The translations under genes were made by a program, and so were the position numbers. 64,000 nucleotides of DNA from NCBI GenBank assembly GCA_009859145.1, contig VRVR01000034.1, forward strand, positions 5,305 to 69,304, in the 5' to 3' direction. This stretch comes from Andalucia godoyi And28 (taxonomy: Eukaryota > Protista > Jakobida). This document shows, one piece after another, positions 25,544-47,928 of this stretch. The notes beneath the pieces were generated by a model. The model was not told where the DNA came from. It did no database searches and saw only the letters and a program-made list of their open reading frames with translations. Position 1 is the stretch's first letter, and each line of letters opens with the position of its first letter.

Positions 25544-27241
25544 TCAAAGTGCGTACACATCCAGGACAGAGGGATTTTCACTGAATGCAGGTCTCGCAAT
25601 GATTAGTTGGCGAGAAGGGGAGACCGCCATCGCAGGCGTTCCGGCAACGAACGGCGAGGTCGCAGCAGGTGAGCCAATCCTATACGCGTTCACACGACCT
25701 TCGGTTTCTTGTATCTGGAGAACTGCAGGTTCACAGCCCTTGGGGCATGGAAGAGAGACACCTGACGTGGACATGATCAATACGGATCCATCTGAACACA
25801 AGACGGCAATGCGACCATCGTCCACAAATGAGATCTCGGAAAAGCAGATGAACGCAGATGCATCGATCCAGCGCCAGGTCCTCGCTTTCGACAAGCTGCA
25901 GTGGGTCACATCTAGATGAGAGATGGTAACGGAGTGCATCGAAACTGTCGCCACAACGGTCGATGATGACTGGATTGCGCATGCACAGTCAACATGTTCA
26001 GGAACCGACAGCATTTGCAACAGCGTCAGCGAAGAGCGAGTCTCGTGACTAACAGAATTCGATGACAGCGAGAGAATCGCAGATTTCCCATCTCGCCATA
26101 CACAAAGTAACCTATCATGCGACAGATGCTCCATGAAAGAACACGTTGCCTGAGAACCAACAACATCATGAATGAACTGAAAGCTTGCAAAGTCTACACT
26201 GCGGGCTACTCTATTCCAATCCTTGCTATTGCCACTGCCTCCCATAATGCTACTGTTGCTGCCCGTCTCGTCTTCAGATTTCCTTTCGCGAAATACAAAG
26301 GAAACAACACACCCAGCACGGGAAACAAGCGACAAATGAGAGCAGCACGACCCGTCTGGTGAATCGAACACGGGAGACCAGCAAGCATTCGAAAAACAAA
26401 AGACGTTTCCGTGAAAAGACCACGCGTCTCCTCGGATAGAGAGCACTTCAGACTTTGGTTTTCGACCGCGCTGTGTACGCGTGATGTCTGTCAATGCTGA
26501 CGCACTATCGTCCAACACAGACGGAAGCACGTTGTGTCTTCGCAAAGTATCCACTAAATCCGATCGGAATTTCCGAAATAGGACACCCTTCTTATGACAA
26601 TACTCACGATGGCGACGATAAATTTCTTGTCGGAATGACGGGTCCGAGAAGCCCAGAGAGCCGAGCAATTCCGAGTGTTGACTCCATACGTAGTCTACAA
26701 AGTGGCGCAGAAAGAAGTGACCAGGCATGTTTCTGGACTGCGGAAACGTCCCTGGTTCAGGAACTGCGTCCAACAGACCAGCGATCACCATTTTGGCAAG
26801 GCCTCGAAGATAGAACGCCACAGCGTCGATAGACCACTTCACCAACAGTTCGGTACGCATCGCGCTGGGATCTTCGGGAACGTCCGCACACACAACCGGC
26901 GAAATCAGCTCGATCAATCGATTTTCCACATCCTCGACTTCAGCGTCGGTCACCTCTGTCAGTCCTTCTGCATCGTCCGCAGGTGCTTCTGGAGCTTCTG
27001 CCGTAGCTTCTGTATCATCCGTTCCATCCACCTGCGGAATGACCGTCGGTGTGTCCGTCGGCATCCGGGGGCCCTCCAAGCTCGAATTGCCATCCAAAAA
27101 TGGAGTCATTGTTAGTTCGTGTATGGAGCGAGCATATTGAACGCGTGCGTTCACGAGCTGCGGAGAACAAGTCCCCAATTCTCTCATATATGCCTCATAA
27201 AACGACGTCATGAAATCGATGCAACAAATTGTCGGATCCAT
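25544..27241 (-). CDS. Hypothetical protein (acidic region, RGRKPK motif, C-terminal beta-rich/propeller-like region)
   Basis: Long ATG ORF (565 aa from MDPTICC); no family recognised. Confidence 0.7.
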   Translation of the reverse strand: MDPTICCIDFMTSFYEAYMRELGTCSPQLVNARVQYARSIHELTMTPFLDGNSSLEGPRMPTDTPTVIPQVDGTDDTEATAEAPEAPADDAEGLTEVTDAEVEDVENRLIELISPVVCADVPEDPSAMRTELLVKWSIDAVAFYLRGLAKMVIAGLLDAVPEPGTFPQSRNMPGHFFLRHFVDYVWSQHSELLGSLGFSDPSFRQEIYRRHREYCHKKGVLFRKFRSDLVDTLRRHNVLPSVLDDSASALTDITRTQRGRKPKSEVLSIRGDAWSFHGNVFCFSNACWSPVFDSPDGSCCSHLSLVSRAGCVVSFVFRERKSEDETGSNSSIMGGSGNSKDWNRVARSVDFASFQFIHDVVGSQATCSFMEHLSHDRLLCVWRDGKSAILSLSSNSVSHETRSSLTLLQMLSVPEHVDCACAIQSSSTVVATVSMHSVTISHLDVTHCSLSKARTWRWIDASAFICFSEISFVDDGRIAVLCSDGSVLIMSTSGVSLPCPKGCEPAVLQIQETEGRVNAYRIGSPAATSPFVAGTPAMAVSPSRQLIIARPAFSENPSVLDVYAL

Positions 27242-28468
27242 GGGTATGGTGCTTGTATGGCATATCCAAGAAAACAGCACGGAATCCAGTGCTACAAACA
27301 CGGGCCTTGAAAAGCAACAGAAAGAGGAAGAGAATGTCGGTGGGTGGGAAAACGGAACAAACATGAGATCAAACATCGCATCAAAGGGGATTACCAACCA
27401 ACAAACACACGCACACACACACACACATAACGGACAACGCTACGCTATGAAAATGAAGAAACGCAAGAGTGGAGAATAAAGAAAATGAAAGCGGCATTAA
27501 GAATGGTGAAACATACTCTTTGGAGAACTTCATCACAGGGGACCACTTACATCTTGTGAACGTTCGGAAGCTGGAACATGCTGTGTTATCAGGAACACAC
27601 TCTGGAGGGGAAGAAAGTCAATGGAAAAAATGTAATTACAATTGTCAGCACACGAGAAAACAGCTTCCAAAAATATTAATGAAAATAACATAATTAAAAA
27701 ATTAAAAAAAGGCACACAACGTCGAAAAGCCGAGGAAGGTACGCAGAGAGGACAAACTGTTCATGGCACATCCGATCCGCTTCAATGTGAAATACACATC
27801 GATGTTCTCAGCATAGGGTTCAGGATGCGTAAGCGACGCTGAAAAGTCAAACGGAGACTGCGGATTCTACGATTCAGAGACGAGGAAGACGAACGGGTGG
27901 TTGGTGAGTTGTTAGACATGTGCTTGGATACATCGTCAATCCACGCAAGAAAAAGAAGAGGAAAATAGGAAGGGCGTGGGGGAAAGAACAGCCGGGCCAC
28001 AGTCTCTTTTGCGTGACAGTGTGAAACAGGGTGGGGAAGCATACGGATACGAGGACTTCATTAGCTGTAGTCAGCAAGACATGGCCCGCAAGCGACGTCT
28101 GTATTGCATGTCGGTGATTCTTCGGGCTAAACGCAACCGCGTGTCGTTCTCTTAACAAGGGGGCGTCGGTCGACATAGGAACATCACGCAGCAACAAAGG
28201 CTTGTAAAAAAGAAAGCGTATCTGGATTCTCTCCATTTGGACTTTGTGATTTTCTTCTTTGGGGCTTTTGTTGAGGGAAAAGTGTGCTTCTGTCATTTTT
28301 CCATGCAAGTTGAGTCTGTTGAGTCTGTTGAGTCCGTTGCATCCACACGAGGCTAGACAGTCGAACCCTGCCACGAAAAAAGCCAAGAAACGAACAGCAA
28401 CGAGGAAACGAAAGAAACGAGAAAAGCTGAAGAGTGAGAAGAGAAGTGCTATCTACTGTTGCTGATGT

Positions 28469-31171
28469 ATGCAGGGATTCATCTATCTTCATAAAAAGCG
28501 CCCTCCGTTAGCATCTTCATTGCCCTCAAGGCCAGCGGACAATCCCGTTTTGCAGAGCACAAACTCGTATTTGGAAGATCTTTCGATCGATTCGATTGAT
28601 CACGCTCGGGTGGATGGCGTGGCTGCTGTATCCGTGCCACAGCCATCGTCTTGCTCTTCTTCATATTCTGAACCAGCGGAGGGCGCGGCTCGCACACGTG
28701 GATTAAGTGCGGCGAAAATGGAGTTTCTTTCGGCGCTCTCGGAGAAGCTTCGTGCGTTGAAACAATCATCTACGTACGGTGAGACGTCGGATGGCGCGCA
28801 GTTCATGACGGTGTCGCAGGATGTGGTCGTGACACAGTCCATGATCGTCGCGCCGTCTTCTGCGATTCAGGTGGATCTGCGTGGAGTGCTGGTGTCGAGT
28901 GAATGTCATGGCGGCCGGAACGGGGACGGAGGCTCGCAGGATGACTGTAATGATTCCGTTTCCTCCCGAGAGAACTCGCTGTCGGAATCCAATCGGTCAG
29001 GCTCGGACAGCGAGGATGCATACAGCCTGATTGCCCAACGGACATTGCCTGCAGATTTTGCGACTCCAGAAATTGTGGTTACACAGAAGAGGAGCAATTT
29101 CCAAGCGGGAGTTTCCACCAAGGAAACTGCGAGTGACACTGTGCGCTCAGATGCAGAATCTCTGTCGTCCATGTCCGGACCATTGTTTTCCTCCCTGGAA
29201 TTTCAAACAAACCGAACTCTTTTTGAAGAAATTGGCGCAAAGAAAATATGTGGAACTGACACGGCGACAAGGGCGAACGAGAGGCATGAGCGCCATTTTC
29301 CGACGATCGCTCCTTCGTTTTCTCCCTCCGTGGTCGAGGACATCGTGGTGCAACATTCTCTCCCATTGGATGGCACGCTGGGCTCCATGGAAAAACCTCC
29401 CTCTGCAATCAGGGAGCGAGACTGCGTTGTTCTCGAACCAGAATCCCAGTTGCCCATGCGAGAGCCAGGGAGCGAACAGGACGCGTCCGCAGTTCCAGAC
29501 ACGTCTGTGGTGCTGCAGAGTCCTACACAGTCACCGTGCCCAACTCCTGTGAAGCCGACGCAGACCAGTACTGTCGTGGAGACTGTTACTTCTCTCCTGT
29601 CTCCAGTCCTCACGGTTGCCGTAGCCGTCGCCCACTCTGCCTCTGCTTCTGCGTCTGTGTCTGCCTCTTTCGATCGTATTCCGTCGATGGCGAATGTTCT
29701 CGTTCCCGAGTCGCAAGATGCTTCCGCAGTTCGACCACCCCTTGCCGGCTCTCAGGTTGCGATGGCTTCGATGGAAGCGATGATGATGGTGACTGCTAGT
29801 GTGTCCGAAGATTCTGGAAACAGCAATCGTGAGAGCGCATCATCGGTGTCTCTGCCCGAAGAACCCGGTCCCATTGTACATTTGCCGCAGTCTGCGGCTT
29901 CTCCCTCCGCATCAGAGTCGGCTTCCGATTTGTATCCTCTGTTCCCAAACAATCTCATCTCCTTGGAATCGCAGTTGCGGAGGGACTGTAGCAGCAATCT
30001 GGAGCGACAAGATGCCCCGGAATGTCTGCGTTCTGGTAGATTCCTCATTCCCGCGAGCCAAGAACTCGCGAGAACACTGGTCAGGATTGTGGAGCAGCCT
30101 TTGAAAGACTTCATACCAGCAGTCTCTGATGTTCGAAGAACAATTCCAAGCTCTCAGGAAGAGTTGGAAATCATTCCTGCCTCTCCAGGATGTTCGCCAT
30201 TATCACCTGCTCAATTTCTTGACGCGGATTCGAACTGTGAAGTCCCGGAAGCCGGAGGCCGCATGAGCAATGCTGGGAGCAACGCGTTGCAAACCTCTAT
30301 CTCCGAACTCGATCCACCACCGATTTCCAAGAAGTCTGCAAAATCAAATGGCCAACAGCCGCAGAAGCGTGCGAATCCAGAGTCCTCGATGGATTCTTGC
30401 GGTGTACCCAGTATCGTGAAACGCTCTCGAGTCCGACATGGAAAGACTGCGACACTTCCCAACGCTGCGTTGTTTGTTGTCGCAGAGGAACCAAATTTGC
30501 TGGAGCACCCAAGCAGTGGTCTTCGAATGGCACTTTCGGGATCCTCTACCGACCGTGCTGAGACGTTTTTTGCAGATCGCGCTTTCTTGATCTTCAACGT
30601 CTCCAAAACAACAAAGGACGCGGCTACTGCGCTATCTGCACGTATTCAGCTGCACGGTGGTGTGTTGATCACCGCTCTTCCGAGCATGGAGCAAGCCACA
30701 CGCTACAAGAGTGTTCACTGTGTGTCGCTTCAAGAAGGTCTCGTATCGAAAACTCTGATGATGCTTGTTGCTTGTGGATTTTCTCCCGTTCTGTCGCGAT
30801 GGATTGATTTCTGCCACGTGAGAAATGAGTTCTTGGACCCTTCGCTCTTCGCGGTCTTTCCGACTGCGCCATTTCATTCCACCTTTATTCCCATGGAGGA
30901 TCGAGTCTTCTACGGGGAGAAGGTACTGTTGCATCCGGATCTGTCGTCCTTGGAAGACTGGAGGAACGTCATCGCGGGAGCAGGTGGCATTTGCTTGTTT
31001 GACATGTCTGTCGAGGCGTTGGATGAGGAGTGCTCCTTCTTTGTCGTTGGAGAAGGCGTCGAGCTACCCCGCGATGTTCGGCACTTTGCCCGTTCTCGTC
31101 GAGTACATCCGTCTTACATCGCTCAATGTATTCTACACGGACGCGTGCCTCGAGATCTGCATCCTCGTTGA
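28469..31171 (+). CDS. Tandem-BRCT DNA-damage checkpoint mediator-like protein (53BP1/Rad9/MDC1-like architecture)
   Basis: About 650-aa disordered N-terminus with about 12 SQ/TQ motifs; C-terminal BRCT1 (FFADRAFLIF...RIQLHGG...LVACGFSPVLSRWIDFC) and BRCT2 (FYGEKVLL...WRNVIAGAGG...VHPSYIAQCILHG). Confidence 0.75.
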   Translation: MQGFIYLHKKRPPLASSLPSRPADNPVLQSTNSYLEDLSIDSIDHARVDGVAAVSVPQPSSCSSSYSEPAEGAARTRGLSAAKMEFLSALSEKLRALKQSSTYGETSDGAQFMTVSQDVVVTQSMIVAPSSAIQVDLRGVLVSSECHGGRNGDGGSQDDCNDSVSSRENSLSESNRSGSDSEDAYSLIAQRTLPADFATPEIVVTQKRSNFQAGVSTKETASDTVRSDAESLSSMSGPLFSSLEFQTNRTLFEEIGAKKICGTDTATRANERHERHFPTIAPSFSPSVVEDIVVQHSLPLDGTLGSMEKPPSAIRERDCVVLEPESQLPMREPGSEQDASAVPDTSVVLQSPTQSPCPTPVKPTQTSTVVETVTSLLSPVLTVAVAVAHSASASASVSASFDRIPSMANVLVPESQDASAVRPPLAGSQVAMASMEAMMMVTASVSEDSGNSNRESASSVSLPEEPGPIVHLPQSAASPSASESASDLYPLFPNNLISLESQLRRDCSSNLERQDAPECLRSGRFLIPASQELARTLVRIVEQPLKDFIPAVSDVRRTIPSSQEELEIIPASPGCSPLSPAQFLDADSNCEVPEAGGRMSNAGSNALQTSISELDPPPISKKSAKSNGQQPQKRANPESSMDSCGVPSIVKRSRVRHGKTATLPNAALFVVAEEPNLLEHPSSGLRMALSGSSTDRAETFFADRAFLIFNVSKTTKDAATALSARIQLHGGVLITALPSMEQATRYKSVHCVSLQEGLVSKTLMMLVACGFSPVLSRWIDFCHVRNEFLDPSLFAVFPTAPFHSTFIPMEDRVFYGEKVLLHPDLSSLEDWRNVIAGAGGICLFDMSVEALDEECSFFVVGEGVELPRDVRHFARSRRVHPSYIAQCILHGRVPRDLHPR

Positions 31172-31475: not shown

Positions 31476-32774
31476 TCAGACGAGGTGGGACTGAATGACA
31501 CCAGCCAGGGAAGTGAGCTCTCTCTTGAACTCGGCAGGGAGGGCTTTCCATTCGTTATCGCTCAGGGAAACCAGTTTCCCTCGCAATCGCACCAAATCCG
31601 AAAGCGGGAAATCATCCGTCAAATCGTCGACTTTAGAATGCCGAACCGAACGAAAGCTCATCAGCTCTCCAGGGGTTGAGTACACCCCGCCATTGCGCTG
31701 CGCTGGCAACTGTGGAGATGTCGACGTCTTCTGTGGCGATGTAGAAGGTCGCGCAGCCGGCAGCCCGCTTTTGTTGGTAGGCCGCGCTTCTGCAAGCGGT
31801 GACATGATCATCACAGCCTGGCGTAATCTTGGTGGAGAGTTTGATTCGCGCTTCAAAGACGACGAATAGGACGGAGTCTGGTTCTGCGCAGCAGAGGCTG
31901 AAGAAGCTGCACTAGAAGCTGGGTGATTGAGCAACGATTGCCATGAAGGAAGCACCTTTTTCTGTTCACGCGACAATCTGGTCTCTGATTTGAGAACTGC
32001 TTCTTCCAAATCCGACGTTCGAAGTTCGGACTCTCCATGAAACGAGACACCAACAGCGTCGCCATGATCTGTGTTTCTGTCTGCGCCGTCGTCAGTATCG
32101 TCGTTAAACAATGAGCCCTGTTGATTCTGGTATTTGGACGTAAAAGGCGATCGAGACGCCGCATACTGCTTCCGGAGCGTTTCCCGATAATTACTCCACA
32201 CCGAAAGCAACGGTCCGCCTCCATTTGCAGTTGTCCCCGTTGTGGCGCTGACATTAGACCCGGCATTGGCATTCAGCTTGCCGCTCAGCAGTGGCCCAGA
32301 GTCGCCCGTTGCAAAAGTACTGTTCGCTCGGCTCATTTCGGCTTCTGTTTCAGAATCCTCTTGTTCTTGATGCTGTTGCTGCTGACGTCTCGATGTCACC
32401 CACGGAAAAGCGCCCGACTGTTGAAGCAACGACGGACCGACCGGTTGCTGGTGTGCAGGAGATTCGAGTTTCCACCGATACAAGTGTGAAAGATTGGGAT
32501 TTGCAACGACGGATTGCAAAACAGAAGTCTGCTTGCTTGGAGTGTATGGATAATGAATACACTGCGATTGGGATGCACGAACTGAATTCTGCGCAGCAAA
32601 CAAAACAGCAGACCCAGAGGCAGAATTTATATTCGGAGCAGACCCAGCGTGCACAGGAAGAGACGACTGGGAGCGCAAAGGAGTGAAATGCAAGCTTGCG
32701 GTAGATGAGCCAGAGATGAGACGCTGGTGATGATGATGGTGAACAGGCGTCGTCGTTGATGGTGCGGCGTGCAT
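31476..32774 (-). CDS. Hypothetical low-complexity protein with short helical C-terminal domain
   Basis: 432-aa ATG ORF, Ser/Pro/Gln-rich; C-terminal DDFPLSDLVRLRGKLVSLSDNEWKALPAEFKRELTSLAGVI. No family recognised. Confidence 0.65.
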   Translation of the reverse strand: MHAAPSTTTPVHHHHHQRLISGSSTASLHFTPLRSQSSLPVHAGSAPNINSASGSAVLFAAQNSVRASQSQCIHYPYTPSKQTSVLQSVVANPNLSHLYRWKLESPAHQQPVGPSLLQQSGAFPWVTSRRQQQQHQEQEDSETEAEMSRANSTFATGDSGPLLSGKLNANAGSNVSATTGTTANGGGPLLSVWSNYRETLRKQYAASRSPFTSKYQNQQGSLFNDDTDDGADRNTDHGDAVGVSFHGESELRTSDLEEAVLKSETRLSREQKKVLPSWQSLLNHPASSAASSASAAQNQTPSYSSSLKRESNSPPRLRQAVMIMSPLAEARPTNKSGLPAARPSTSPQKTSTSPQLPAQRNGGVYSTPGELMSFRSVRHSKVDDLTDDFPLSDLVRLRGKLVSLSDNEWKALPAEFKRELTSLAGVIQSHLV

Positions 32775-32902: not shown

Positions 32903-32972
32903 GAAACGAAACGAAACACGAAACGAAACGAAACGAAACGAAACGAAACGAAACGAAACGAAACGAAACGAA
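32903..32972. repeat. (GAAAC)n pentamer repeat
   Basis: Direct: about 13 units with one interruption, in the divergent intergenic region upstream of ATE1. Confidence 0.92.
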
Positions 32973-33237
32973 GCATGCGAGTTTGGTCGCCTCGTTTTAA
33001 CGGGTAGCATCAAGCGTTTCTTTTTTCTTTCTTTCAGTGTGTATCCGTCGGGACATTTCCTGGACTTGGCGGGCCTTTCTTTTTTTGCTCCTATATTCGT
33101 GATTGCACCCTGAATGTCTCTCACTTCCCGTGTTGGAAACTGCGACTTGGTTGTTCTCGACACTGTTGTCCATTCGTTTGTTGCTGGATTCTTGTACTTT
33201 TATTATTATTACCTTTTCTATTCACGAGAGTAGAGGT

Positions 33238-33355
33238 TGGAGACTGGAGACTGGAGACTGGAGACTGGAGACTGGAGACTGGAGACTGGAGACTGGAGAC
33301 TGGAGACTGGAGACTGGAGACTGGAGACTGGAGACTGGAGACTGGAGACTGGAGA
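33238..33355. repeat. (TGGAGAC)n heptamer repeat, 16 full units plus one partial, abutting the ATE1 ATG
   Basis: Direct count; the array ends 2 nt before ATG 33358. Confidence 0.95.
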
Positions 33356-33357
33356 TT

Positions 33358-35067
33358 ATGGAAGAGCTGCGAGTTGTTCGAAAGTCCCAACCTCGGCTGG
33401 TTGTCCCTAAGAATCCGGACATGGGATATCCGTGTGGGTATTGCGGGCAGGAAAACACCTCCGTGACGTTTTCGTCTCTTAGTTGCACGTGCGGCCCTGA
33501 TCCGAGTCTCACGGTGTCCGACTACCAGTCTGTAATTGACCGTGGTTGGCGGAGGTCAGGAGGCTATCTGTACATTAAAGACAATGAGAAGTCGTGTTGT
33601 CCTCATTATCCAATTCGACTGGATGTGCACAGATTTAGGCCTTCGCACTCGCAGAAACGAGTCATTCGACGGTTTCAGTCTGCGCGATTTGGTCCTCTGT
33701 GCGATATCCCCGACTTACATCGCCATGCCAATTCCGATCACGAACAGGACAAGCAGCGCAGTGAAAAGAAACGCAAGTCGTGGGCATGCATTGTCAGTGA
33801 TGTGCTGGGAAAGTCGGAGGCAGTTGCTGCACTGCAACGCGCACTGGCGCTTGAGTTGAAAAACGCTGATGTTGATTCTTCCAAATCGATGAATCAGTCG
33901 AAGAATGAAGTGTCGCTGTTCAGGCTTATGCCGTCGAAGCTGATTCATAGAGGCCAGATCATGTCGAATGCCCCCCTCGCATTTGATCTGGATGCGGATA
34001 AGGCGATGCGGATTGCAGATGCTTTGGTGGCCCAATGCGCGCACGCGGGCGTACTGGATGTTCAGTATGCATTGCCGGGATTTCTCAACGTCAGGCTCGC
34101 TGGAAATGTGTGGACAGACCTTCAAGCGGCGATCGAAAAGGAGCACCTCGAGGTTTTGAAGTGCGATTCCAGCCGGCAGCAGAAGAAGGCACCGGTCGGC
34201 AGCGAGACTGTGGCTGAATCGACTTTGCAAGAACCATTGATGCATACCTTGGGCAGGACCTCTGCGAATTCCTTCACCGTCCAAATCCTGCCATCCGAAT
34301 TTTCAGACGAAAAGTACGCATTGTACAAAAAGTACCAAATGGCGGTGCACAAGGATGCCGAAAAAGATTTATCGGAGGACAGATTCGCGAATTTTCTTTG
34401 CGATTCTCCACTTTTTAATGAACCCATGCCATTGAACAGCGCTAGAATGTCTTCCGTTTCGGACGGCCGCGCAAATCCAGCGAATGCTATTACCGAGTTC
34501 GGCTCGTATCACATGGAGTATAGATGGAACGGGATGTTGATTTCGGTTGGCGTCGTGGATATTCTACCGGCTTGCGTTTCCTCCGTGTATTGCTTCTATG
34601 ACCCCGCGTGGCATGATGCTGCTCTTGGTGTCGTTTCTGCCATGTGCGAAATCCAGCTCGCGCTCGATCTGGCGCTTCCGTACTTTTACCTCGGCTACTA
34701 CATTCACGGGTGTCCCAAAATGCAGTACAAGGCGGGCTACAGCCCGTCAGATCTGCTGTGCCCTGTGACCCTTCACTGGGTTCCCGCTGAACTTTGGAGG
34801 GATCAAATCTGCGCCAACAAGTTCTGTCGACTGGACAAGGGACACGAGGAAGATGCGGCAAGCCGGCAGAAGCCTATCTCTCGGACGGAGATTCTGTCTC
34901 AGAGGGTGCTCGTCCATCTGCCCCGTGCTGTCGAGACGTGGACCGTTGCGAATGTCCTGTCTGCGGTTTCCAAGCCCGCTGGAGAAAAAATCGTTGCTGC
35001 GATTCAGCGGTACATGCAAGCGGTAGGCCCTGAGCTTTGCAAAGAAATGGATCTTGTGTTCCAGTAG
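33358..35067 (+). CDS. ATE1: Arginyl-tRNA--protein transferase with an internal ArgRS-N-like insertion
   Basis: N-domain PCGYC, YQSVIDRGWRRSGGYLY, SCCPHYPIRLDVHRFRPSHSQKRVIRR; C-domain YALYKKYQMAVHKD, FANFLCDSPL, GSYHMEY, VGVVDILPACVSSVYCFYDP, LGVVSAMCEI, YFYLGYYIHGCPKMQYKAGYSPSDLLCP. Confidence 0.95.
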   Translation: MEELRVVRKSQPRLVVPKNPDMGYPCGYCGQENTSVTFSSLSCTCGPDPSLTVSDYQSVIDRGWRRSGGYLYIKDNEKSCCPHYPIRLDVHRFRPSHSQKRVIRRFQSARFGPLCDIPDLHRHANSDHEQDKQRSEKKRKSWACIVSDVLGKSEAVAALQRALALELKNADVDSSKSMNQSKNEVSLFRLMPSKLIHRGQIMSNAPLAFDLDADKAMRIADALVAQCAHAGVLDVQYALPGFLNVRLAGNVWTDLQAAIEKEHLEVLKCDSSRQQKKAPVGSETVAESTLQEPLMHTLGRTSANSFTVQILPSEFSDEKYALYKKYQMAVHKDAEKDLSEDRFANFLCDSPLFNEPMPLNSARMSSVSDGRANPANAITEFGSYHMEYRWNGMLISVGVVDILPACVSSVYCFYDPAWHDAALGVVSAMCEIQLALDLALPYFYLGYYIHGCPKMQYKAGYSPSDLLCPVTLHWVPAELWRDQICANKFCRLDKGHEEDAASRQKPISRTEILSQRVLVHLPRAVETWTVANVLSAVSKPAGEKIVAAIQRYMQAVGPELCKEMDLVFQ

Positions 35068-35436: not shown

Positions 35437-37864
35437 TTACTGCTTGTTGTCAGCAGCATAGTGCTCTGCGAGCATGGCAGCTGCCTCGTCAACAGCAGAC
35501 TTCAGCTCGGCGGGCGATTCGAAGAGATTGATCAGCTCCGAAACATCCAGCTCGATCAACATGCCAGTGACCTTGGCCGGGTTCTGAGGATACAGAGCCT
35601 GCACGCTGCGGAACAGGAACTCGCCAAGATACCGCTTTGCCTCAGAAGGCTCCATGTGGGAGACGAGAGACAGATCAAGAGGAGCGGACGCACCAGCAGC
35701 CGGAGCGGCGCCAGGTGCGGTCGGCGGAATGGAAACAGGCATGGTCATGGGAACTCCCTCCATACGCTGACCTCCGCGCATCGGACCAGGACCGGTACGA
35801 GGACCCGGGCCGCCAGGGGCTCCACCACGGGCTCCGGGGTACGGCTTTCCTGGCATTCCTCCGCGCATCGAGCCGCCACGGCGGCCTCCGCGCGACATGG
35901 GCAATCCGAACTGGACACCAGGATATCCTATTGCAAGTCAACAAGAAAAGAAAATAAGGAAAAAAACAGTCGATTAGAAAATCCATTCATCGATTCAAAC
36001 AATCCAAGGAAGGGAAAGAAAGAAAAGAAAAGCAAGAAAGAAAAAAGCAGCAAGAGAGAGAGGGGGGAAAAATGCCGAGCGGCAATGTGCTTCGGATGAG
36101 AATTGGATTGCGACGGATCAGACAAACTGTGAAAAGTATCATCAGGATAGAGCAAAGTGTCGTAAGCTGTATCAGAGTGAGCTGAGTTTGTAACATCATG
36201 TCGAAACACCCAATCCAACATCGGAAACAAACAGACCACAGCAAACCAAACAACGAGGAAGCGGGAAGCGGGGGGGAAGCGAAAAGAAAGAAAAAAAGCC
36301 GAAAAAAGCCGAAGGAAGAAGAAGAAGAAGAAGAAGAAGCGGGGAAAACAGACAAAAACTAAAACAAAAACATACCTGGTTGAGCGTTCTGGGGACCGTT
36401 CCAGCGGCGCATACCACCCGGAGGCGGATACATGAACTGCTGTCCTTGAGGGGGCACGACGCCCGGCGGGAAGAACATACCTGGGGGCGGCATTCCGCGA
36501 CCACCAGGAGCACCATTCGGCGCAGGTGCTTGGGAACCCGGGGCACCTGGAGGAGGTGCCATTTGTCCATACTGCATGGCGGCAGCGGCGGCGGCGGCTG
36601 CTGCTGCTGAAGCGGCCATCATGTTGCGCTGTGCATATTGAGCAGCAAGCTGGGCCTGGCGGAACTCTCTCTTCTGGGCAATGGCCACATAGAGGGGCTT
36701 GGAACCCAACATACGCCCGTTCATTTGTGTAACGGCACGAGTAGCCTCCTCTGGAGTGGTGAAACAAACGAAGCCGAACCCACGAGAGATTCCACGCTCG
36801 TCATACATGACCTTGGCGGAGGTGATGTTGCCGAATTCCTCGAATGCCTTGCGAAGCATGTCGTCGGTGGCGTTGTCGTCAAGGTTCTTGATATACAGGT
36901 TGACACCCTGGTACTTGGTCATGCGCTCCATCTTGAGTTGCTCAAATTTGCGACGGAGTACAGACATGCGCTCCGTCTTCTTCTGTGCGCGTCCGACAAA
37001 GACTTGCTTGCCAGGAGCAATCTCCGCTCCATTAAGCGCATCCACAGCCGACTTGGCAGCCTCCGGAGTTCCAAAGGTCACGAAACCAAAGCCCTTGGAG
37101 GATCCAGTGCCCTCATCACGACGGACAAAGACGGAGAGGATGTCACCGTGCGGCTCAAATATCTTGGCCAAGTCATCCTCGGTCCAGGTCTCAGGGAAGT
37201 TCTTGACATAGACATTGTTGAACTTGGGCTCGCCATCCGAACCAGAGCGCTCACGGCGTGGTACGAATCGCATAACCTCCACACGAGTTCCGGCCAACAT
37301 CATTTTGTTGACAGTAGCAATCGCGGCGTCTGCAGCCTCCTGTGTCTCAAAGTGCACATATCCGTAGCCCTTGGACTTTCCGTCAGATGCCATTGCAACC
37401 TTACAGGACAAGATGTTTCCGAACGGCGAGAATGTATCGTAGAGAGACTTGTTGTCGATGTCCTTGGCAAGATTCTTGACAAAGATGTTTCCAAGGCCAG
37501 AACGGCGCATCGACGGGTCGCGCTGCAACCACATGACACGCATCGGGCGTCCCTTGAGCTCGGAGAAGTTGAGTGCCTCCAACGCACGATCTGCATCAGC
37601 AGCACTCTGGAAGTTGACGTATGCATACTGCAGAGAGCGACGAGTCACGGCATCACGAAGCAAGCGGATCGATGAAATCGGTCCAATGGCTCCAAACACC
37701 TCGAGCAAATCCTGTTCCGTGGCATCCGGGTTCAAATCACCAACGTACAAAGACGACGACGAAAAGCGTGCTGCGTCGTCTGCAGAAGAAACAGCAGCAG
37801 CAGCAGCAGCAACGGGCGCGCCAGACTCGACAGTCTGCGATACAGTTTGATTTGCAACGGCCAT
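35437..37864 (-). CDS. PAB1: Cytoplasmic polyadenylate-binding protein (4 RRM + MLLE); exons 37864-36376 and 35927-35437 (659 aa)
   Basis: [57 protein letters not shown]; MLLE LGEFLF...[11 protein letters not shown]. The joined length of 1980 nt is in frame. Confidence 0.96.
35928..36375 (-). other. PABP intron (448 nt), snoRNA host
   Basis: GTATGT donor at 36375, TAG acceptor at 35928, phase 1 (CCA G|GA TAT). Confidence 0.88.
36113..36204 (-). ncRNA. Intronic box C/D snoRNA, SNORD29/snR71-like guide for an LSU rRNA 2'-O-methyl-A
   Basis: Box C AUGAUGU 36199-36193, D' CUGA 36175-36172, C' CUGAUGA 36145-36139, D CUGA 36121-36118. Closing stem cgac/gucg plus flanking uuggauug/caauccaa. The D' guide AAACUCAGCUCAC pairs (one G-U) with conserved LSU GUGAGCUGGGUUU, and the +5 rule points to the A of GUGAG. 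Confidence 0.82.
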
Positions 37865-38013
37865 TCTTGTCTTGTCTTTTTTTTTTCCTTTTTCAGTGTT
37901 TCTCTTCAGCAACAATAAACTTGATTTTCTCTTTCAAAACAGAAAAGCAAAATCGAAGTTTGGCAGATGAGCGAAGAAGAAAGATGGAGAAAAAATCAAA
38001 GAAGAAACTGATG

Positions 38014-39198: not shown

Positions 39199-41562
39199 TC
39201 ATGTGTTGTGCCGACGCACTTGCTCCAGCCACATCATGGCAAGAGCGCGTGTGGTCTTTGAAATATCGAGCGACGATGTGAAGGATGCAGCAACCGGATC
39301 CTCTTCGTCAGACTCGATGCTGAGGTCCGTGAGATCATCGCCCGCTGGTATATCAAGACTCGTTGTATCGGACGGGAGTAACGACGCGCCCGTCATGGGC
39401 CTGCTTGGACCTGCCGCTGCGGGTTCTTCATCAAGATCAGCCATGAGATCGGCAAGACGAGCCTGTGCTCTTGCTTTGGAGAGATACTCGGAAGTTCGTG
39501 TTCCGGATGGAATACTGGCGTTCATCGCAGCGGAAGCCATGGGAGACAACGGCACGGGAGGCCTGGAGGAAGAAGCGGGAGGTCCAGGAGAAATCGTCAA
39601 TGCAACTTTCGACGGGGTTGCGGTATTGCTAAGTGTGCCTCCAGGAGTTTTTGCTGTCGGTGTCTGGGTCGGAGCGGCAAGCGGGGTTGCAGGGCTTGCG
39701 ACTTGCGTGCTGGAAGCTCTCGCAGGCGTTTTGGGGGCGGATTGCGGGAGCGACGGCACGAAGGACACTGAGGGAGAGTTGACATATACCCCAGCCCCGG
39801 CAACCGAGGGGGTCGCCGGCGTAATCGGCACGATTGTCGGCTGCGGAGTTTTGGCAACAATGGGGGTAGATGCTTCGCGAAGAAGCTTACGCCGCATTTC
39901 TTCTTCATAGAGCAAGTCGACTGTGGTAGTGCGGCTCTGCAGTGCTGCGATGTCGCGGGCAGACCGACCGTCTCGAGTCTTGGCAAACACATCTGCGCCG
40001 TATTCACGAATAAGAATCGATACTGCTTCGTCATTGCCCTTGACTGCAGCTTCATGCAACACTGTCATTCCGGAAGAATCTGGGCCCTGGAAATCCACAT
40101 TTGCTTTTAGAAGAGCCCGCAGACAGCTTGTTCCGGTGGGAGAGCAGCACTGGGCTGCATAGTGCAACAGCGTTTTCCCTCCATTATCGCGAATATGAAG
40201 TTTCGGGTGCTGTGTGGACAGAAGAAACTCGCAAACCTCCCAGTGGCCATCCAAAACAGCCCAGAACAGACACGTGCATCCGTTCTTGTCGCGAACATGA
40301 ACAGACGCACCGGCATTGATCAACAGCCGCACAATGTCCAGGGATCCGTATCGACACGCCCAGAAAAGCGCAGTTCGACCTTCCTCATCCTTGGTTCCAA
40401 GCATAATGCCGGAGTCGATGAGCCGAGCGACGCACGCACGGTGTCCTCGAGCGCAAGCCCAGAACAGGGGAGATTTGCCGGACAGATCGGGCACATTGCA
40501 TTCAGCCCCTGCTTCCAGCAGGACTGCCATGCTTTCAATGAACCCCAGAGACGCTGCGTATGCGACTGGCGTCCGCTTATCAGCATCCTGTGCATCCTTG
40601 TCGGCCCCCACATCCAACAGGGCCTTCACCATTTTGCACTGCAAGGGACCGTCCACCAGGCAAGCACTGTGCAGAGGTGTGGCTTTGGCCTTGTCCCCGG
40701 AATTAACCTCTGCGCGGTACTGCTTCACCAAGGTCTGCACGAGATCGATTTGAGCGTGAAAGGCGGACTCTGAAAGCTGCGAAGAATTCATCCTTGCGCT
40801 GTCGAATGCAGATGCCGCCCAATGAAGACAGATACGACCATCATCGTCTTTCCAGTTGACGGAAGCATTGCGCTCCAGCAGCATCTCGGTAATCTCTTTG
40901 AATCCGAGTTTGGTCGACCAGAATATGGGTGTTTGGCCTTGAAGGTCTCGTGAATTTGGGTTTGCCTTTTGTTCCAGCAGCAAGAACTTCACCATTGCTA
41001 CCTGGTTGGTGAGCACAGCATAGAAAAGTGGCGTTCTTCCGTGGTCGTCTTTCACATCCAGCTGTGCATGACTCTCCAGCAACAGCTGCGCACAAGCGAT
41101 GTTTCCCGACAATCCACACACATGCAGCGGAGTTCTTCCGTCATTGTCCACGAGTTCTGTCTGATTCTTCACGAGTGGAAAGACAAGGTTCAGACAGTCT
41201 CGCGTCGTCAGTGCATTTGATCTGCAGCAATAATGCAGAGCAGAAAACCCCTTAGAATCCTTCACGCGTGGATCCGAATTTCGCGACAGCAGCACCTGCA
41301 CGCACTTGATCTGTCCAAAATAGCATGCTTTGTGCAGCGGCGTTGCTCCAAGAGAGTCCTTTTCGTCGACACTCGCGCCTTTCTCAATTAAAAATAGTGT
41401 GCATTCAGGATGGTTTCGTGCCGCAGATTCGTGAAGTGCTGTCTGATATGCCCGCAGTGGATGCTTGAACTGAACATTCGCTCCCTGCGCAACACACCGT
41501 CGAACCGCAGAAAAGTCTCCAGATACAACCGCAAAATACAATGTTTCTGACACAGATGGCAT
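39199..41562 (-). CDS. Ankyrin-repeat protein (about 15 repeats) with Pro/Ser/Thr-rich tail
   Basis: Repeated TALHESAA, TPLHKAC, GRTPLHVC, GRTPLFYAV, GQTPIFWS, TPLHSAC, GKSPLFWAC, GRTALFWAC, GKTLLHYAA, GMTVLHEAA. Confidence 0.92.
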   Translation of the reverse strand: MPSVSETLYFAVVSGDFSAVRRCVAQGANVQFKHPLRAYQTALHESAARNHPECTLFLIEKGASVDEKDSLGATPLHKACYFGQIKCVQVLLSRNSDPRVKDSKGFSALHYCCRSNALTTRDCLNLVFPLVKNQTELVDNDGRTPLHVCGLSGNIACAQLLLESHAQLDVKDDHGRTPLFYAVLTNQVAMVKFLLLEQKANPNSRDLQGQTPIFWSTKLGFKEITEMLLERNASVNWKDDDGRICLHWAASAFDSARMNSSQLSESAFHAQIDLVQTLVKQYRAEVNSGDKAKATPLHSACLVDGPLQCKMVKALLDVGADKDAQDADKRTPVAYAASLGFIESMAVLLEAGAECNVPDLSGKSPLFWACARGHRACVARLIDSGIMLGTKDEEGRTALFWACRYGSLDIVRLLINAGASVHVRDKNGCTCLFWAVLDGHWEVCEFLLSTQHPKLHIRDNGGKTLLHYAAQCCSPTGTSCLRALLKANVDFQGPDSSGMTVLHEAAVKGNDEAVSILIREYGADVFAKTRDGRSARDIAALQSRTTTVDLLYEEEMRRKLLREASTPIVAKTPQPTIVPITPATPSVAGAGVYVNSPSVSFVPSLPQSAPKTPARASSTQVASPATPLAAPTQTPTAKTPGGTLSNTATPSKVALTISPGPPASSSRPPVPLSPMASAAMNASIPSGTRTSEYLSKARAQARLADLMADLDEEPAAAGPSRPMTGASLLPSDTTSLDIPAGDDLTDLSIESDEEDPVAASFTSSLDISKTTRALAMMWLEQVRRHNT

Positions 41563-44194: not shown

Positions 44195-45598
44195 ATGGAA
44201 GCGTATCGACAGTTGGTGAACCAACAGTGGAGGTCGCACGGCGTGGAGCCAAGTGTTATGGGCCGCAAGCTGCGCCAGCTTCATTACTCGCACTTCTCAG
44301 TGTGCAAGCCGTTTCTTGTGGGTTTGTGTCCTTACGAAGCTTTGGAAAACACAAAGCTTGATCTGGGCGACTGTCCGAGAATCCATGATGTGGTCTACAG
44401 AGCTGATTTTGAAAATGAAGGCAGCGAATCGCAGAAACAGGCATATCTCATGGAGCAGTTTGCGCTGCTGTCACGAGTGATTTCTGAATTAGATCGATTT
44501 GCAGATCGAGAGAAGAGGTTTGTGGAAAAGTGGAGAGGCGACTCGGAACATCCGGAATGGAGAGAACTCCAAGGCCAAATCACAGCAAAGCTTGCAGAAG
44601 CCGAGCTTGCCGCGGAGGAAGGCGACATTGCCAAAGTTTCCGAAATTATGCTCGAAACAGAGAATCTGAAAGCACGAAAAGACGAGATTGAACACGCTGA
44701 CAAGTCTGTCAATCGCAATGCAACGTATCAGAAAAATGTGTACATTTGCGATACGTGCGGTGCAAAGCTGTCTTCTCTTGACTCGGAACAGCGACTTGCC
44801 GATCATTTCGCAGGAAAGCAACATATCGGTGCACTGAGAATCCGAGAACGATTCGAAGCCGTCAAGGCCCTCCTGGCTCCCCAAGATACGGATTCTCGCA
44901 GAGTGGCCTCGGTCTTTTCCGACTTGCGACTTCCACATCCTAAAATTTCTGGAAGCTCGGTTCTCCGAGCAAATGTGGCTGTCGCATCTTCTGGAAGCGC
45001 CCTAGCATCCTTGGTGACAGCATCGCAAGAACGAGAACCGATTCGCAACTTGGAAACGAAGTTACAGGAGGTGGTTAAGCCACCGCCAAAAGTAGACCTT
45101 GATGAGATTAACGCGCTCGTTTGGAAAAGGATTGTTTCACAAGCACCTCCCTTGTCCGAAGAATTGCGAGCTAGACTACGTGAGTTTCCGAATCGCAATC
45201 GAGATGAAGGCTGGATCAGCACTCAGCAAGATCATCCCGCCGCTCGGCCGCATCGGGTCAGCCGCGGTGGCTCCGGTCAGCGAGCTGGGCGTGGACAGCC
45301 TGGTGGCCGAGGTGGATATCGGCATGATTCCTCTCGTGATCGACCGTATGATAGGCCGAGAGAGCGCGAGTTGTATGACAGAGACAGGAGCAGAGACAGA
45401 GATCGCGATCGAGATCGAGACAGAGACAGAGAACGCGGAGATGCTCAGCGGGATGGACGGGACCGCGAATGGGATCGCGAGAGAGGTAGAGAAAGATATG
45501 ATGATAGGAGAGATAGGGACAATAGAGAGCGATACCGAGATCAAGACCGGGATCGCGACAGTTATTCGCGAGATCGTGATCGAGATCGACGCTGGTAA
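44195..45598 (+). CDS. LUC7: LUC7-like U1 snRNP splicing factor with RD/RE-rich tail
   Basis: ZnF1 VCKPFLVGLCPYEALENTKLDLGDCPRIHD; ZnF2 ICDTCGAKLSSLDSEQRLADHFAGKQHIG; C-terminal RD/RE repeats. Confidence 0.93.
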   Translation: MEAYRQLVNQQWRSHGVEPSVMGRKLRQLHYSHFSVCKPFLVGLCPYEALENTKLDLGDCPRIHDVVYRADFENEGSESQKQAYLMEQFALLSRVISELDRFADREKRFVEKWRGDSEHPEWRELQGQITAKLAEAELAAEEGDIAKVSEIMLETENLKARKDEIEHADKSVNRNATYQKNVYICDTCGAKLSSLDSEQRLADHFAGKQHIGALRIRERFEAVKALLAPQDTDSRRVASVFSDLRLPHPKISGSSVLRANVAVASSGSALASLVTASQEREPIRNLETKLQEVVKPPPKVDLDEINALVWKRIVSQAPPLSEELRARLREFPNRNRDEGWISTQQDHPAARPHRVSRGGSGQRAGRGQPGGRGGYRHDSSRDRPYDRPRERELYDRDRSRDRDRDRDRDRDRERGDAQRDGRDREWDRERGRERYDDRRDRDNRERYRDQDRDRDSYSRDRDRDRRW

Positions 45599-45738: not shown

Positions 45739-47928
45739 TCAGTATTTCCCAATCCAATACGATCGACCGTTCGGGTTGTGAATTGTCGACTGCCGGGGAG
45801 CGTCGATGGCCCATTCGTACCAGACCTTAGTAGCGGACGACCTCCTCCACATGCACACCTTGATTATTGTCCCTTTCGTGACTGGAATCGGAACGCGCAG
45901 TGGGAAAAAGATGGGAAACCAGGAAATCAAGCCTGGTGAGTGGCGCGATGGAAGGATGCCGTAAAAGATTTCCTCGAATAAGCGGCTTTCAAAGAATCCG
46001 GCCAGCCCATGCATGAGTGCGTCGGAAGTGGCAGTGAACGACAACGTGATCGAACGATCATTGTCTTTGGGATATGCGGAAGTCGGGGAAACCGTCTGGC
46101 CTGTGTCATCCATGCGCATCAGATCCAGAGAAGCCCTTTCATTGTTCACGTCCTCTTCGGACTTTGGAAGCAAGTGCGGGTTAGGATGGATGTAATGGAA
46201 GCACCGCTTGGGCTCATCAATCAAGAAGAACCGCTTCATCTTCACGACGTACGGCGTTTCCAGAGCCGTAAAAGGACCGCCCGACAGCACAAATGACCGA
46301 CATTCGGACCAGATCTTGTGCGTAGACACGGGGGCCAAGAAGGAGGTAGAGGAGCAAGGGATTGAGATGCCATGCGGCATCTTCAACAGTCGTTGTGCAC
46401 CATCCAGACACTCTGGAGACAATTCATTGTCGCCAAACGACCCGAGCAGCTCCGATACCAGAATGTCCGTCGAGTATTTGCTGGGATCGACCAAACGCAT
46501 GTCCGAGTGCACAATCTCCACTTGCCCTTCCCAGTCAAGATCCTCAGCTTCATTTCGCAGCGTAATGATAGCATTCGGATTCTTTTCGACGGCAATCACA
46601 CGGACTTTGCACTTGGCACGTGCAGCCCCAGATAAAGAAGCTCTCACCAAGGGGCCGCGTCCGGCCCCTACCACCATGATTGTCACGCGGTCTTCCACAA
46701 TCTTTCCTCGTTGTGACAGCGAGGGATTCTTTGTAAGCGCCGAGAACACGGCATCCTCATACAGTTTGTACTTGATCGGATCGCGTTCGAACACTTCGTA
46801 TGTTGAAGACTCCAAATGGTCCGCAAGCGGTTGCAACGGCGACTGCAGATAATCTGCAAAGGGTGCCTCGAACGATTCCATTTCAGTCATCAATGGCAGT
46901 CCTTTGTGCAAGTGGTCGATGTACTTTCCGTACGAAACCATCGACGAAGCCTGCACGTGGCACGGTTTTCCGGTCAACAAGACGTTGGGTTGGAAAGGAA
47001 GAAACTGCAAGATAATCTGCTGGTGTTTCTTTGCCAAAACCGGAAACCCTTTCTTGTTTGGCAAAAAAATGTGCGACGGAATCACCAGCGTTCGAACCGG
47101 CTCCGCAAGCCATCGTTCCAGCCGCTTGCTGCACGCCGGAACTTCCGCAGTCAACACGAGTGCAACGGCCAAGTTCGCATTGAAATCACACTCGGTACGA
47201 ATGCGATTCCACATAAGCCATGCCCAATCGACGTCGCCATCATCGGCGATACTTTCCATGCCAAGCTCGCGCTTCAGATCCTCGATCGCGTGGGCGTGCA
47301 GCACCACAGGTATGGGTACGTAAAAGAACATTCCGCTCCGTGATTTCAGAAGGTTTTCAAGAACGATTCGCCCATACGCTGCGATTCCTGCACTTGGTGT
47401 TGGGAGAATGACTGCTTGCAAGTTGAGATGTGCAGCCCACGCTATTTCTGCATTAAGGGTGTCTTCCGCTACCTTGCGAACATTTGCGTCCGCCGACGAA
47501 AACTGGATCCATTCCGAAGTCCTGCCCAGAATGTACGACGACCAGTCTCGACTCGGCAGCTCCTTGTCCGAGCGCGTCATAGGCTGCGTCGATCTCCGCC
47601 ACTCGTCTGCAAAATGACGATTTCGCGGATGAGAAATAGGAATCGCTATGAAATCAAACGACGAGTCAATCGCAGAATCCAAAACCGTTCCAAGATGAGA
47701 AACGCTCGGAACATCCAACCCCACAAACGGCGTCGGATGCGCTGTCCCACCCCCACTCGCAGTCGCAACAGCAGCAGAACCACTAGTACCATCCTCGACG
47801 TCCTCGTCGTGAGAACGGGCGACTACCTTGGGTGATTTTCCTTTTGTTGTCTGCAAAGAAGGCGATTCGCCCTTCGCCTGACCACTACTGCCACCACCAC
47901 TCGACTCTTTCTTTCGCCCCTTGTTCAT
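45739..47928 (-). CDS. PRMT5: Protein arginine N-methyltransferase 5
   Basis: DYLQSPLQPLADHLESSTYEVFERDPIKY, VVGAGRGPLV, AVEKNPNA, DILVSELLGSFGDNELSPECLDG, GLISWFPIFFPL, IHNPNGRSYWIG. Confidence 0.97.
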   Translation of the reverse strand: MNKGRKKESSGGGSSGQAKGESPSLQTTKGKSPKVVARSHDEDVEDGTSGSAAVATASGGGTAHPTPFVGLDVPSVSHLGTVLDSAIDSSFDFIAIPISHPRNRHFADEWRRSTQPMTRSDKELPSRDWSSYILGRTSEWIQFSSADANVRKVAEDTLNAEIAWAAHLNLQAVILPTPSAGIAAYGRIVLENLLKSRSGMFFYVPIPVVLHAHAIEDLKRELGMESIADDGDVDWAWLMWNRIRTECDFNANLAVALVLTAEVPACSKRLERWLAEPVRTLVIPSHIFLPNKKGFPVLAKKHQQIILQFLPFQPNVLLTGKPCHVQASSMVSYGKYIDHLHKGLPLMTEMESFEAPFADYLQSPLQPLADHLESSTYEVFERDPIKYKLYEDAVFSALTKNPSLSQRGKIVEDRVTIMVVGAGRGPLVRASLSGAARAKCKVRVIAVEKNPNAIITLRNEAEDLDWEGQVEIVHSDMRLVDPSKYSTDILVSELLGSFGDNELSPECLDGAQRLLKMPHGISIPCSSTSFLAPVSTHKIWSECRSFVLSGGPFTALETPYVVKMKRFFLIDEPKRCFHYIHPNPHLLPKSEEDVNNERASLDLMRMDDTGQTVSPTSAYPKDNDRSITLSFTATSDALMHGLAGFFESRLFEEIFYGILPSRHSPGLISWFPIFFPLRVPIPVTKGTIIKVCMWRRSSATKVWYEWAIDAPRQSTIHNPNGRSYWIGKY

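Follow-up and report, generated by a model that had tools for sequence, protein, structure and literature searches.

A homologue of the arginyl-tRNA synthetase N-terminal (Add1) domain inserted in the arginyltransferase ATE1 of Andalucia godoyi, and its proposed role in the selection of tRNA-Arg

The stretch of DNA analysed here (the window) comprises 64,000 nucleotides of contig VRVR01000034.1 from the jakobid Andalucia godoyi And28. At 33358..35067 (+) it carries a single-exon gene for arginyl-tRNA--protein transferase, ATE1, whose product of 569 residues (plus stop codon) was recognised by its ATE_N and ATE_C domains and its match to human ATE1. Because ATE_N occupies residues 24-101 and ATE_C residues 318-468, the region in the middle of the protein is an insert between the two ATE1 halves. 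It contains at residues 152-247 (33811..34098, +) a domain that, judged from sequence comparison, is almost certainly homologous to the additional N-terminal domain (Add1) of arginyl-tRNA synthetase (ArgRS), Pfam family PF03485 (Arg_tRNA_synt_N). The explanation as a whole, namely that an ArgRS-derived Add1 domain inserted in ATE1 serves the selection of tRNA-Arg, is considered probable. Here we present a description of the gene and its insert, together with the evidence for this relationship, its predicted function and its distribution among eukaryotes.

The enclosing open reading frame (ORF) extends from 33103 to 35067 (+), and its first ATG, at 33358, gives the 569-residue protein. The frame of 1710 nucleotides is without interruption, and a database protein of identical sequence (P0001) is likewise 569 residues long, with the inserted segment included. 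The ATE_N half (Pfam PF04376; 33427..33660, +; 77.9 bits against a cut-off of 27, E 6.9e-22) contains a CxxC pair (C26, C29) and a CC pair (C80, C81), all four residues occupying invariant columns of the ATE1 alignment A1. The ATE_C half, the GNAT catalytic core (PF04377; 34309..34761, +; 148.7 bits against a cut-off of 25, E 1.5e-43), was aligned to the human and yeast ATE1 structures, and the closest solved relative is human ATE1 (8tzv, E 1.4e-56). Alignment with ATE1s from across eukaryotes covers the whole length of the protein, in which 46 of the 46 invariant residues of A1 are conserved. Its core is that of an ordinary member of the ATE1 family, predicted by family to transfer Arg from Arg-tRNA-Arg to N-terminal Asp, Glu or oxidised Cys of proteins, which are thereby marked for degradation. 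Besides the insert, Pfam finds ATE_N and ATE_C only, with neither tRNA-synt_1d nor the DALR anticodon-binding domain, and the protein is therefore neither an ArgRS nor a fragment of one. The nearest database ATE1 (P0002) is metagenomic, being 38% identical overall and 35% identical over the insert. (An antisense ORF of 189 residues at 33715-34284 runs across the region; it has no family match and was taken as spurious.)

The domain is separated from the two halves by linkers that fall into gap-rich columns of A1. Linker 1 (residues 102-151; 33661..33810, +) is charged, variable and weakly conserved, with a helix predicted by AlphaFold2 (AF2) at residues 142-152 (H3-13 of the insert model), whereas linker 2 (residues 248-317; 34099..34308, +) has a predicted helix at residues 250-261 (H111-122) followed by a stretch of low conservation. 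The four peptides singled out by the initial annotation are all in frame in one ORF on the forward strand (residues 155-247, nucleotides 33820-34098): AVAALQRALALEL (residues 155-167, 33820-33858), HRGQIMSNAPLAF (residues 197-209, 33946-33984), KAMRIADALVAQ (residues 215-226, 34000-34035) and VLDVQYALPGFLNVRL (residues 232-247, 34051-34098).

Regarding the individual elements, all on the forward strand, helix alpha1 (EAVAALQRALALELKNAD, residues 154-171, 33817..33870) is predicted as H15-32 with a predicted local distance difference test score (pLDDT) of about 88-90 and aligns with the first helix of the ArgRS N-domain. The motif G-Q-I-M-S-N-A-P-L-A-F (residues 199-209, 33952..33984) is, according to the alignments, the counterpart of ArgRS 'hGDYxSNxAMxLAK' and helix alpha2. 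Helix alpha3 (ADKAMRIADALVAQCAHA, residues 213-230, 33994..34047; H74-91, pLDDT 87-93) is the counterpart of 'PxxIAExIxxxL'. The last of the four peptides is predicted to form the beta3-turn-beta4 hairpin (E93-100 and E103-108), which is the counterpart of 'IEKVEIAGPGFINxxL'. Within the hairpin, G241-F242-L243-N244 (34078..34089) is the aromatic-x-Asn motif that forms the pocket for A20, the adenosine at position 20 of the tRNA, in ArgRS. The sole invariant columns across 47 ATE1 inserts are the G and the N of G-x-[ILVM]-N. This motif is found in 69 of 69 inserts, with x being H (51), F (12), Y (3), M (2) or N (1), so that H, F or Y holds the aromatic position in 66 of them; F242-L243-N244 of the window also fits the Tyr/Phe-x-Asn/Gln motif described for nucleotide 20. 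The pocket residue two positions before the invariant Asn differs by lineage: Chloroplastida have His there, and Andalucia, the stramenopiles and the haptophyte have Phe.

The initial annotation had likened the insert to the ArgRS N-terminal domain, and both a profile test against PF03485 and stronger profile searches agree with this assignment. Searched in isolation, the insert of the window matches no Pfam family other than PF03485, with E-values of 0.044 and 0.023 in two trimmings (14.8-15.7 bits), and the match spans profile positions 15-85 of 85. (Note that these E-values are corrected for 24,736 Pfam models although the family had been named in advance; by our calculation the P-value for this one family is therefore about 1e-6.) A hidden Markov model (HMM) of the ArgRS N-domain, compared with the whole window protein, scored 18.7 bits (P = 9e-8), with residues 181-259 aligned, and a profile of ATE1 inserts matched P0001 at residues 152-246 with an E-value of 3e-14. 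PF03485 was the top match for 9 of 11 ATE1 inserts, and 17 of 47 matched it at E<=0.01 (best 1.3e-11), with one stray match to another family. Three ATE1s score above the Pfam gathering score of 21.5 bits, which is an operational annotation threshold and not a biological feature: the full-length proteins P0191 (33.4 bits, residues 128-219) and P0217 (34.7 bits; its cluster contains a protein of Diacronema lutheri) and the fragment P0226 (43.0 bits). In all three the match sits between ATE_N and ATE_C. Since a few ATE1s exceed the threshold, automated databases may already show this architecture for some entries.

A profile built from 11 ATE1 inserts only was compared, using HMMER, with 1.84e9 representative proteins and yielded 118 matches at a library-wide E<=1e-3. 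Most of these were ATE1s, and at least 19 were ordinary ArgRS or N-terminal ArgRS fragments, matched exactly on the Add1 domain with E-values ranging from 4.9e-6 (P0184) and 2.8e-5 (P0192) to 8.9e-4. The identity of these ArgRS was confirmed by Pfam (28-98 bits) and, if they were long enough, by the presence of tRNA-synt_1d and DALR_1. A second ATE1-only profile, built from 47 sequences, gave seven matches at E<=1 among all PDB sequences, and seven out of seven were ArgRS, in the order human cytoplasmic (4.6e-5) and Pyrococcus horikoshii (2zue, 1.2e-3), then Klebsiella, Neisseria and Thermus thermophilus. Comparison of the ATE1 inserts with ArgRS N-domains by hhalign gave a probability of 99.4% (E 5.7e-21, 96 columns), as against 1.4% for a reversed-sequence control. 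This figure is inflated because the ArgRS set had been chosen by the ATE1 profile, but the unbiased Pfam and PDB results agree with it in direction. The joint alignment is collinear through alpha1, beta1, 'hGD-x-SN-A', 'P-x-x-IA-E' of alpha3 and the 'G-F-I-N' hairpin.

The structure of the insert was predicted by AF2, for Andalucia from an alignment of ATE1 inserts only. The Andalucia model has a pLDDT of 76.7, with alpha1, alpha3 and the final beta-hairpin confident, and a model of the Brassica insert has a pLDDT of 88.6 and the order helix, strand, short helix, strand, helix, helix, strand, strand. The predicted order of elements, alpha-beta-beta-alpha-alpha-beta-beta, fits ArgRS Add1, which is an alpha/beta fold with a four-stranded antiparallel sheet. 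G-x-x-N is placed at the turn and the start of the last strand (beta3/beta4) in both models. In a Foldseek search of the PDB with the Andalucia model, human ArgRS held ranks 1-2 with TM-scores (template modelling scores) of 0.36-0.40, and 11 ArgRS chains were within the top 36. (Note that in such searches a domain of about 100 residues with long loops is compared with whole ArgRS chains of 560-600 residues.) The case for homology rests on sequence profiles, not on fold comparison.

Several results weigh against the assignment to Add1. The window copy, at 15.7 bits, misses the gathering score and is therefore filed as a divergent homologue, not as a member that Pfam would annotate. A single-sequence phmmer search of the PDB with the insert found no ArgRS, only a chance ferredoxin match at E 1.4. 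The Andalucia copy has a shortened alpha2 region, for which the prediction is of low confidence (pLDDT 53-55, model residues 41-70). The Foldseek ranks of human ArgRS carry an E-value of 0.11, which is not significant, and the Brassica model retrieved no ArgRS in the top 50, where HAD cap domains lead at E>0.2. Together with a 2024 preprint in which the insertion of the fly, plant, mouse, human and slime mould enzymes is counted as intrinsically disordered (PMC11370617), the low score and the Foldseek values would suit a chance or compositional resemblance within a disordered ATE1 insertion. Such a resemblance does not account for ArgRS matches with E-values down to 4.9e-6 among 1.84e9 proteins, for PDB matches to ArgRS only, for the three ATE1s above the Pfam cut-off, for the difference between the hhalign probability and its reversed control, or for the compact alpha/beta domain that is predicted most confidently in the plant copy; the idea is thereby effectively refuted. 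A retained intron or an artefact of the gene model, in which case the segment would be missing from the mature protein, is likewise hard to maintain and is the least probable explanation of all. The genome has some introns, and two ORFs share the coding sequence of the adjacent PABP gene, but the ATE1 frame is unbroken, the Add1 homology is collinear across nucleotides 33811-34098, the metagenomic relative P0002 has the same domain in the same place, and the identical database protein contains the segment.

In ArgRS, Add1 recognises the D-loop of the tRNA, and nucleotide 20 is received in a pocket built by the Tyr/Phe-x-Asn/Gln motif of strands beta3/beta4; in the Escherichia coli enzyme these two strands make up the floor of the pocket for A20 (PMC3956977). 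Arginine identity depends chiefly on A20 in E. coli, plants and mammals, and only marginally so in yeast (PMC9976931). The insertion point in ATE1 corresponds by homology to the site of the long tRNA-contacting loop of human ATE1, between helix alphaC and GNAT strand beta6. Deletion of the helix in the human loop weakens tRNA binding 2-4 fold (PMC11283454). We infer a function in reading A20 because the pocket motif is invariant and the insertion point suits contact with the elbow of the tRNA. In the proposed mechanism, the GNAT core would grip the Arg-charged acceptor end, while the Add1-like domain, held on two linkers of about 50-70 residues, would dock at the elbow on the D-loop, where the aromatic-x-Asn pocket (F242, N244) would read the arginine-specific nucleotide at position 20. 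The result would be an identity check for tRNA-Arg and added affinity for ATE1, both independent of the anticodon. That binding of the elbow and D-loop is the function of the domain is somewhat favoured by these sequence data. A tRNA-Arg gene was sought in the window for a check of position 20, and none was found.

Set against this function is the proposal that the domain is a true Add1 homologue which no longer reads the D-loop and acts instead as a generic tRNA or RNA clamp, as a module for regulation or protein-protein contacts (in oligomerisation or the recruitment of substrates, for example) or as a structural spacer. Yeast ATE1 works without such a domain, and for mouse ATE1 the acceptor arm alone suffices for arginine transfer (PMC11283454); the domain is therefore inessential for catalysis, and it would tune tRNA selection rather than catalysis. 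The aromatic residue of the pocket varies among the inserts (H, F, Y, M or N) and is His, not Tyr or Phe, in most plants. Many inserts, that of Andalucia among them, have a degraded 'hGDY' motif. Furthermore, most cytosolic tRNA-Arg of stramenopiles have C20 or U20 instead of A20 (PMC9976931) and the domain is nevertheless kept there, so that 'A20 reader' is not a universal description. On the other side, the two residues that remain unchanged in 69 inserts from distant eukaryotes are the pocket-hairpin G and N of ArgRS, human ATE1 makes its contact with the elbow of the tRNA from this same insertion point, and Add1 domains have no other known function. We therefore regard the loss of D-loop reading as unlikely, if by a wide distance the most serious of the competing explanations, and keep D-loop binding as the preferred function.

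Two further observations concern the inserts of other organisms. Those of land plants and green algae have a conserved basic loop between the first two strands (for example AKRKKL or PxAKQRKKLP; in the plant protein P0025, residues ~180-195), which is missing from ArgRS N-domains and is a candidate for an extra contact with the tRNA backbone. P0015, a metagenomic ATE1 of 652 residues, has at residues 92-324 a middle region of 231 residues that is recognised neither by the insert profile nor by Pfam; an 'SGWLVLSV'-like stretch occupies the place of G-x-x-N, and the region may be an even more divergent or decayed copy of the domain. Regarding the sensitivity of Pfam, neither P0025 nor P0002 shows a match to PF03485 at E<=0.05.

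Compared with Add1 of ArgRS (reference structures 1F7U, 1IQ0, 2ZUE, 5B63 and 4Q2T), the ATE1 domain is homologous over the full ~85-100 residues, is predicted to have the same order of helices and strands, and has three motifs in common with it, namely hGD-x-SN-A, P-x-x-IA-E and G-[F/Y]-[IL]-N, the last with the aromatic-x-Asn pair of the A20 pocket. It differs in lying inside a GNAT-fold aminoacyl-transferase between long linkers, and not N-terminal to the catalytic domain of a class I synthetase. The ATE1 copies are also far more divergent, the plant copies being invisible to Pfam, and His often replaces Tyr/Phe. Yeast ATE1 (7TIF, 7WFX, 8E3S, 8FZR) shares the ATE_N/ATE_C core, the cysteine motifs and the binding of the acceptor arm, but is without an insert at this position; in the sampled fungal ATE1s P0034 and P0078 the corresponding stretch is short or unmatched by the insert profile. 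Human and mouse ATE1 have at the same insertion point a loop with helix alphaCloop (8TZV, 8UAU; PMC11283454, PMC11370617), which differs in being largely disordered and K/R-rich. The same papers present the extra contact with the tRNA elbow as an innovation that arose in 'higher organisms' and is missing in Arabidopsis and amoeba (PMC11283454, PMC11370617).

Alignment by MAFFT suggested that the animal ATE1 loop (PKPGxGADxSKPPCRKAKxIRKERK...PKSLEEFI...) might be a decayed Add1. When 35 animal loops were compared with 47 inserts by hhalign, the probability was 0.1%, which leaves this idea unsupported, although not disproved. MAFFT had aligned the block 'HKLEVRLV' with the hairpin; this block is the GNAT strand preceding ATE_C.

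A precedent for a non-synthetase enzyme that binds tRNA via a synthetase-derived module is the HisRS-like domain of the kinase GCN2. There uncharged tRNAs in general are sensed by an entire, degenerate HisRS body, whereas ATE1 would have borrowed only a small ArgRS appendage that reads tRNA identity and used it on the tRNA of the same amino acid.

The insert was found in Discoba (Andalucia and Pharyngomonas kirbyi, P0005), Amoebozoa (Cavostelium, P0006), Chloroplastida (Brassicaceae, a fern, Zizania, Chara, Spirogloea, Tetraselmis and Bryopsis), stramenopiles (the brown alga Ectocarpus, Choristocarpus and the oomycete Saprolegnia) and one haptophyte (Diacronema). The fungal and animal ATE1s among the best 120 ATE1 matches of the database search gave no match to the insert profile. 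The initial annotation had pointed to SNIAF and GHINF motifs in plants, and these are indeed present as YTSNIAF and KGHINF at the homologous positions of ATE1/2 of Brassicaceae; its suggestion of an older, under-recognised form of ATE1 that includes plants is likewise borne out by the distribution over these five groups. In the searchable literature, no publication was found that connects ATE1 with the N-domain of ArgRS.

Since the insert occurs in at least five lineages of supergroup level, it was probably captured before the last eukaryotic common ancestor. The simplest reading of the distribution is that the capture would have been from an ArgRS gene, with later loss in fungi and, in animals, replacement by a mostly disordered loop. 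A more far-reaching version holds that the ancestral ATE1 had an ArgRS domain reading position 20, that opisthokonts lost it (the fungi entirely, the animals in favour of a disordered loop and alphaCloop), and that, in the lineages that keep it, the pocket residue co-varies with nucleotide 20 and with the pocket of the organism's own ArgRS. This is offered tentatively, as an attractive possibility that falls slightly on the doubtful side.

The way in which ATE1 selects Arg-tRNA-Arg from the tRNA pool is acknowledged to need an explanation. Structural work has dealt with the ATE1s of yeast, where the insert is missing, and of mammals, where the loop is disordered, and the insertion in plants and protists has been described as disordered too. 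In contrast to that description, most of the sampled eukaryotic lineages appear to have at that site a folded, ArgRS-derived module with the pocket residues retained, and the opisthokonts would be the derived exception. The Asn and one aromatic residue or His would provide a mutable handle on tRNA selection by ATE1, also in ATE1/ATE2 of Arabidopsis. For research on N-degrons and on tRNA, the interest is that the question of tRNA choice becomes a mutagenesis experiment on two residues. The domain would also be a clean case of an identity-reading appendage of a synthetase being reused by a non-synthetase enzyme on the same tRNA. If the ancestral ATE1 did read position 20, the arginylation branch of the N-degron pathway would have shared its identity check with the synthetase.

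The window is compact, with about 50% GC and genes on both strands. Upstream of ATE1, a perfect tandem array of a 7-bp unit, (TGGAGAC) x 16.9 with 100% identity, occupies 33238-33355 and ends two bases before the ATG at 33358. It shares the reading frame of the upstream part of the ORF and in translation gives WRLETGD repeats there. The same intergenic region holds a second array, (GAAAC) x 13.6, at 32903-32972, and the two arrays are possibly a microsatellite of the 5' untranslated region or the promoter. Three long ORFs on this side have no Pfam family at E<=1e-3; they are located at 25544-27424 (-, 626 residues), 28469-31171 (+, 900 residues) and, just upstream of ATE1, 31476-32774 (-, 432 residues, of low complexity and rich in Ser, Gln and Ala).

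On the other side of ATE1, the PABP gene (35437-37915, -) has its RRMs in 36359-37915 and its MLLE domain in 35437-35904. Over the RRM part the protein is 100% identical to Andalucia godoyi ANDGO_06902 (EukProt), and from the split over two ORFs an intron or a frame change is expected in the low-complexity stretch between them. An ankyrin-repeat protein gene (39199-41562, -) follows about 4 kb downstream of ATE1. The metagenomic contig of P0002 (L001/L002, 7573 onward) has an ankyrin-repeat gene about 3 kb downstream of its ATE1, and the pairing may be a neighbourhood conserved in an uncultured relative of Andalucia. Further downstream are two ordinary housekeeping genes, for the U1 snRNP-associated splicing factor LUC7 (44195-45598, +) and for a complete, three-domain PRMT5 arginine methyltransferase (45739-47928, -).

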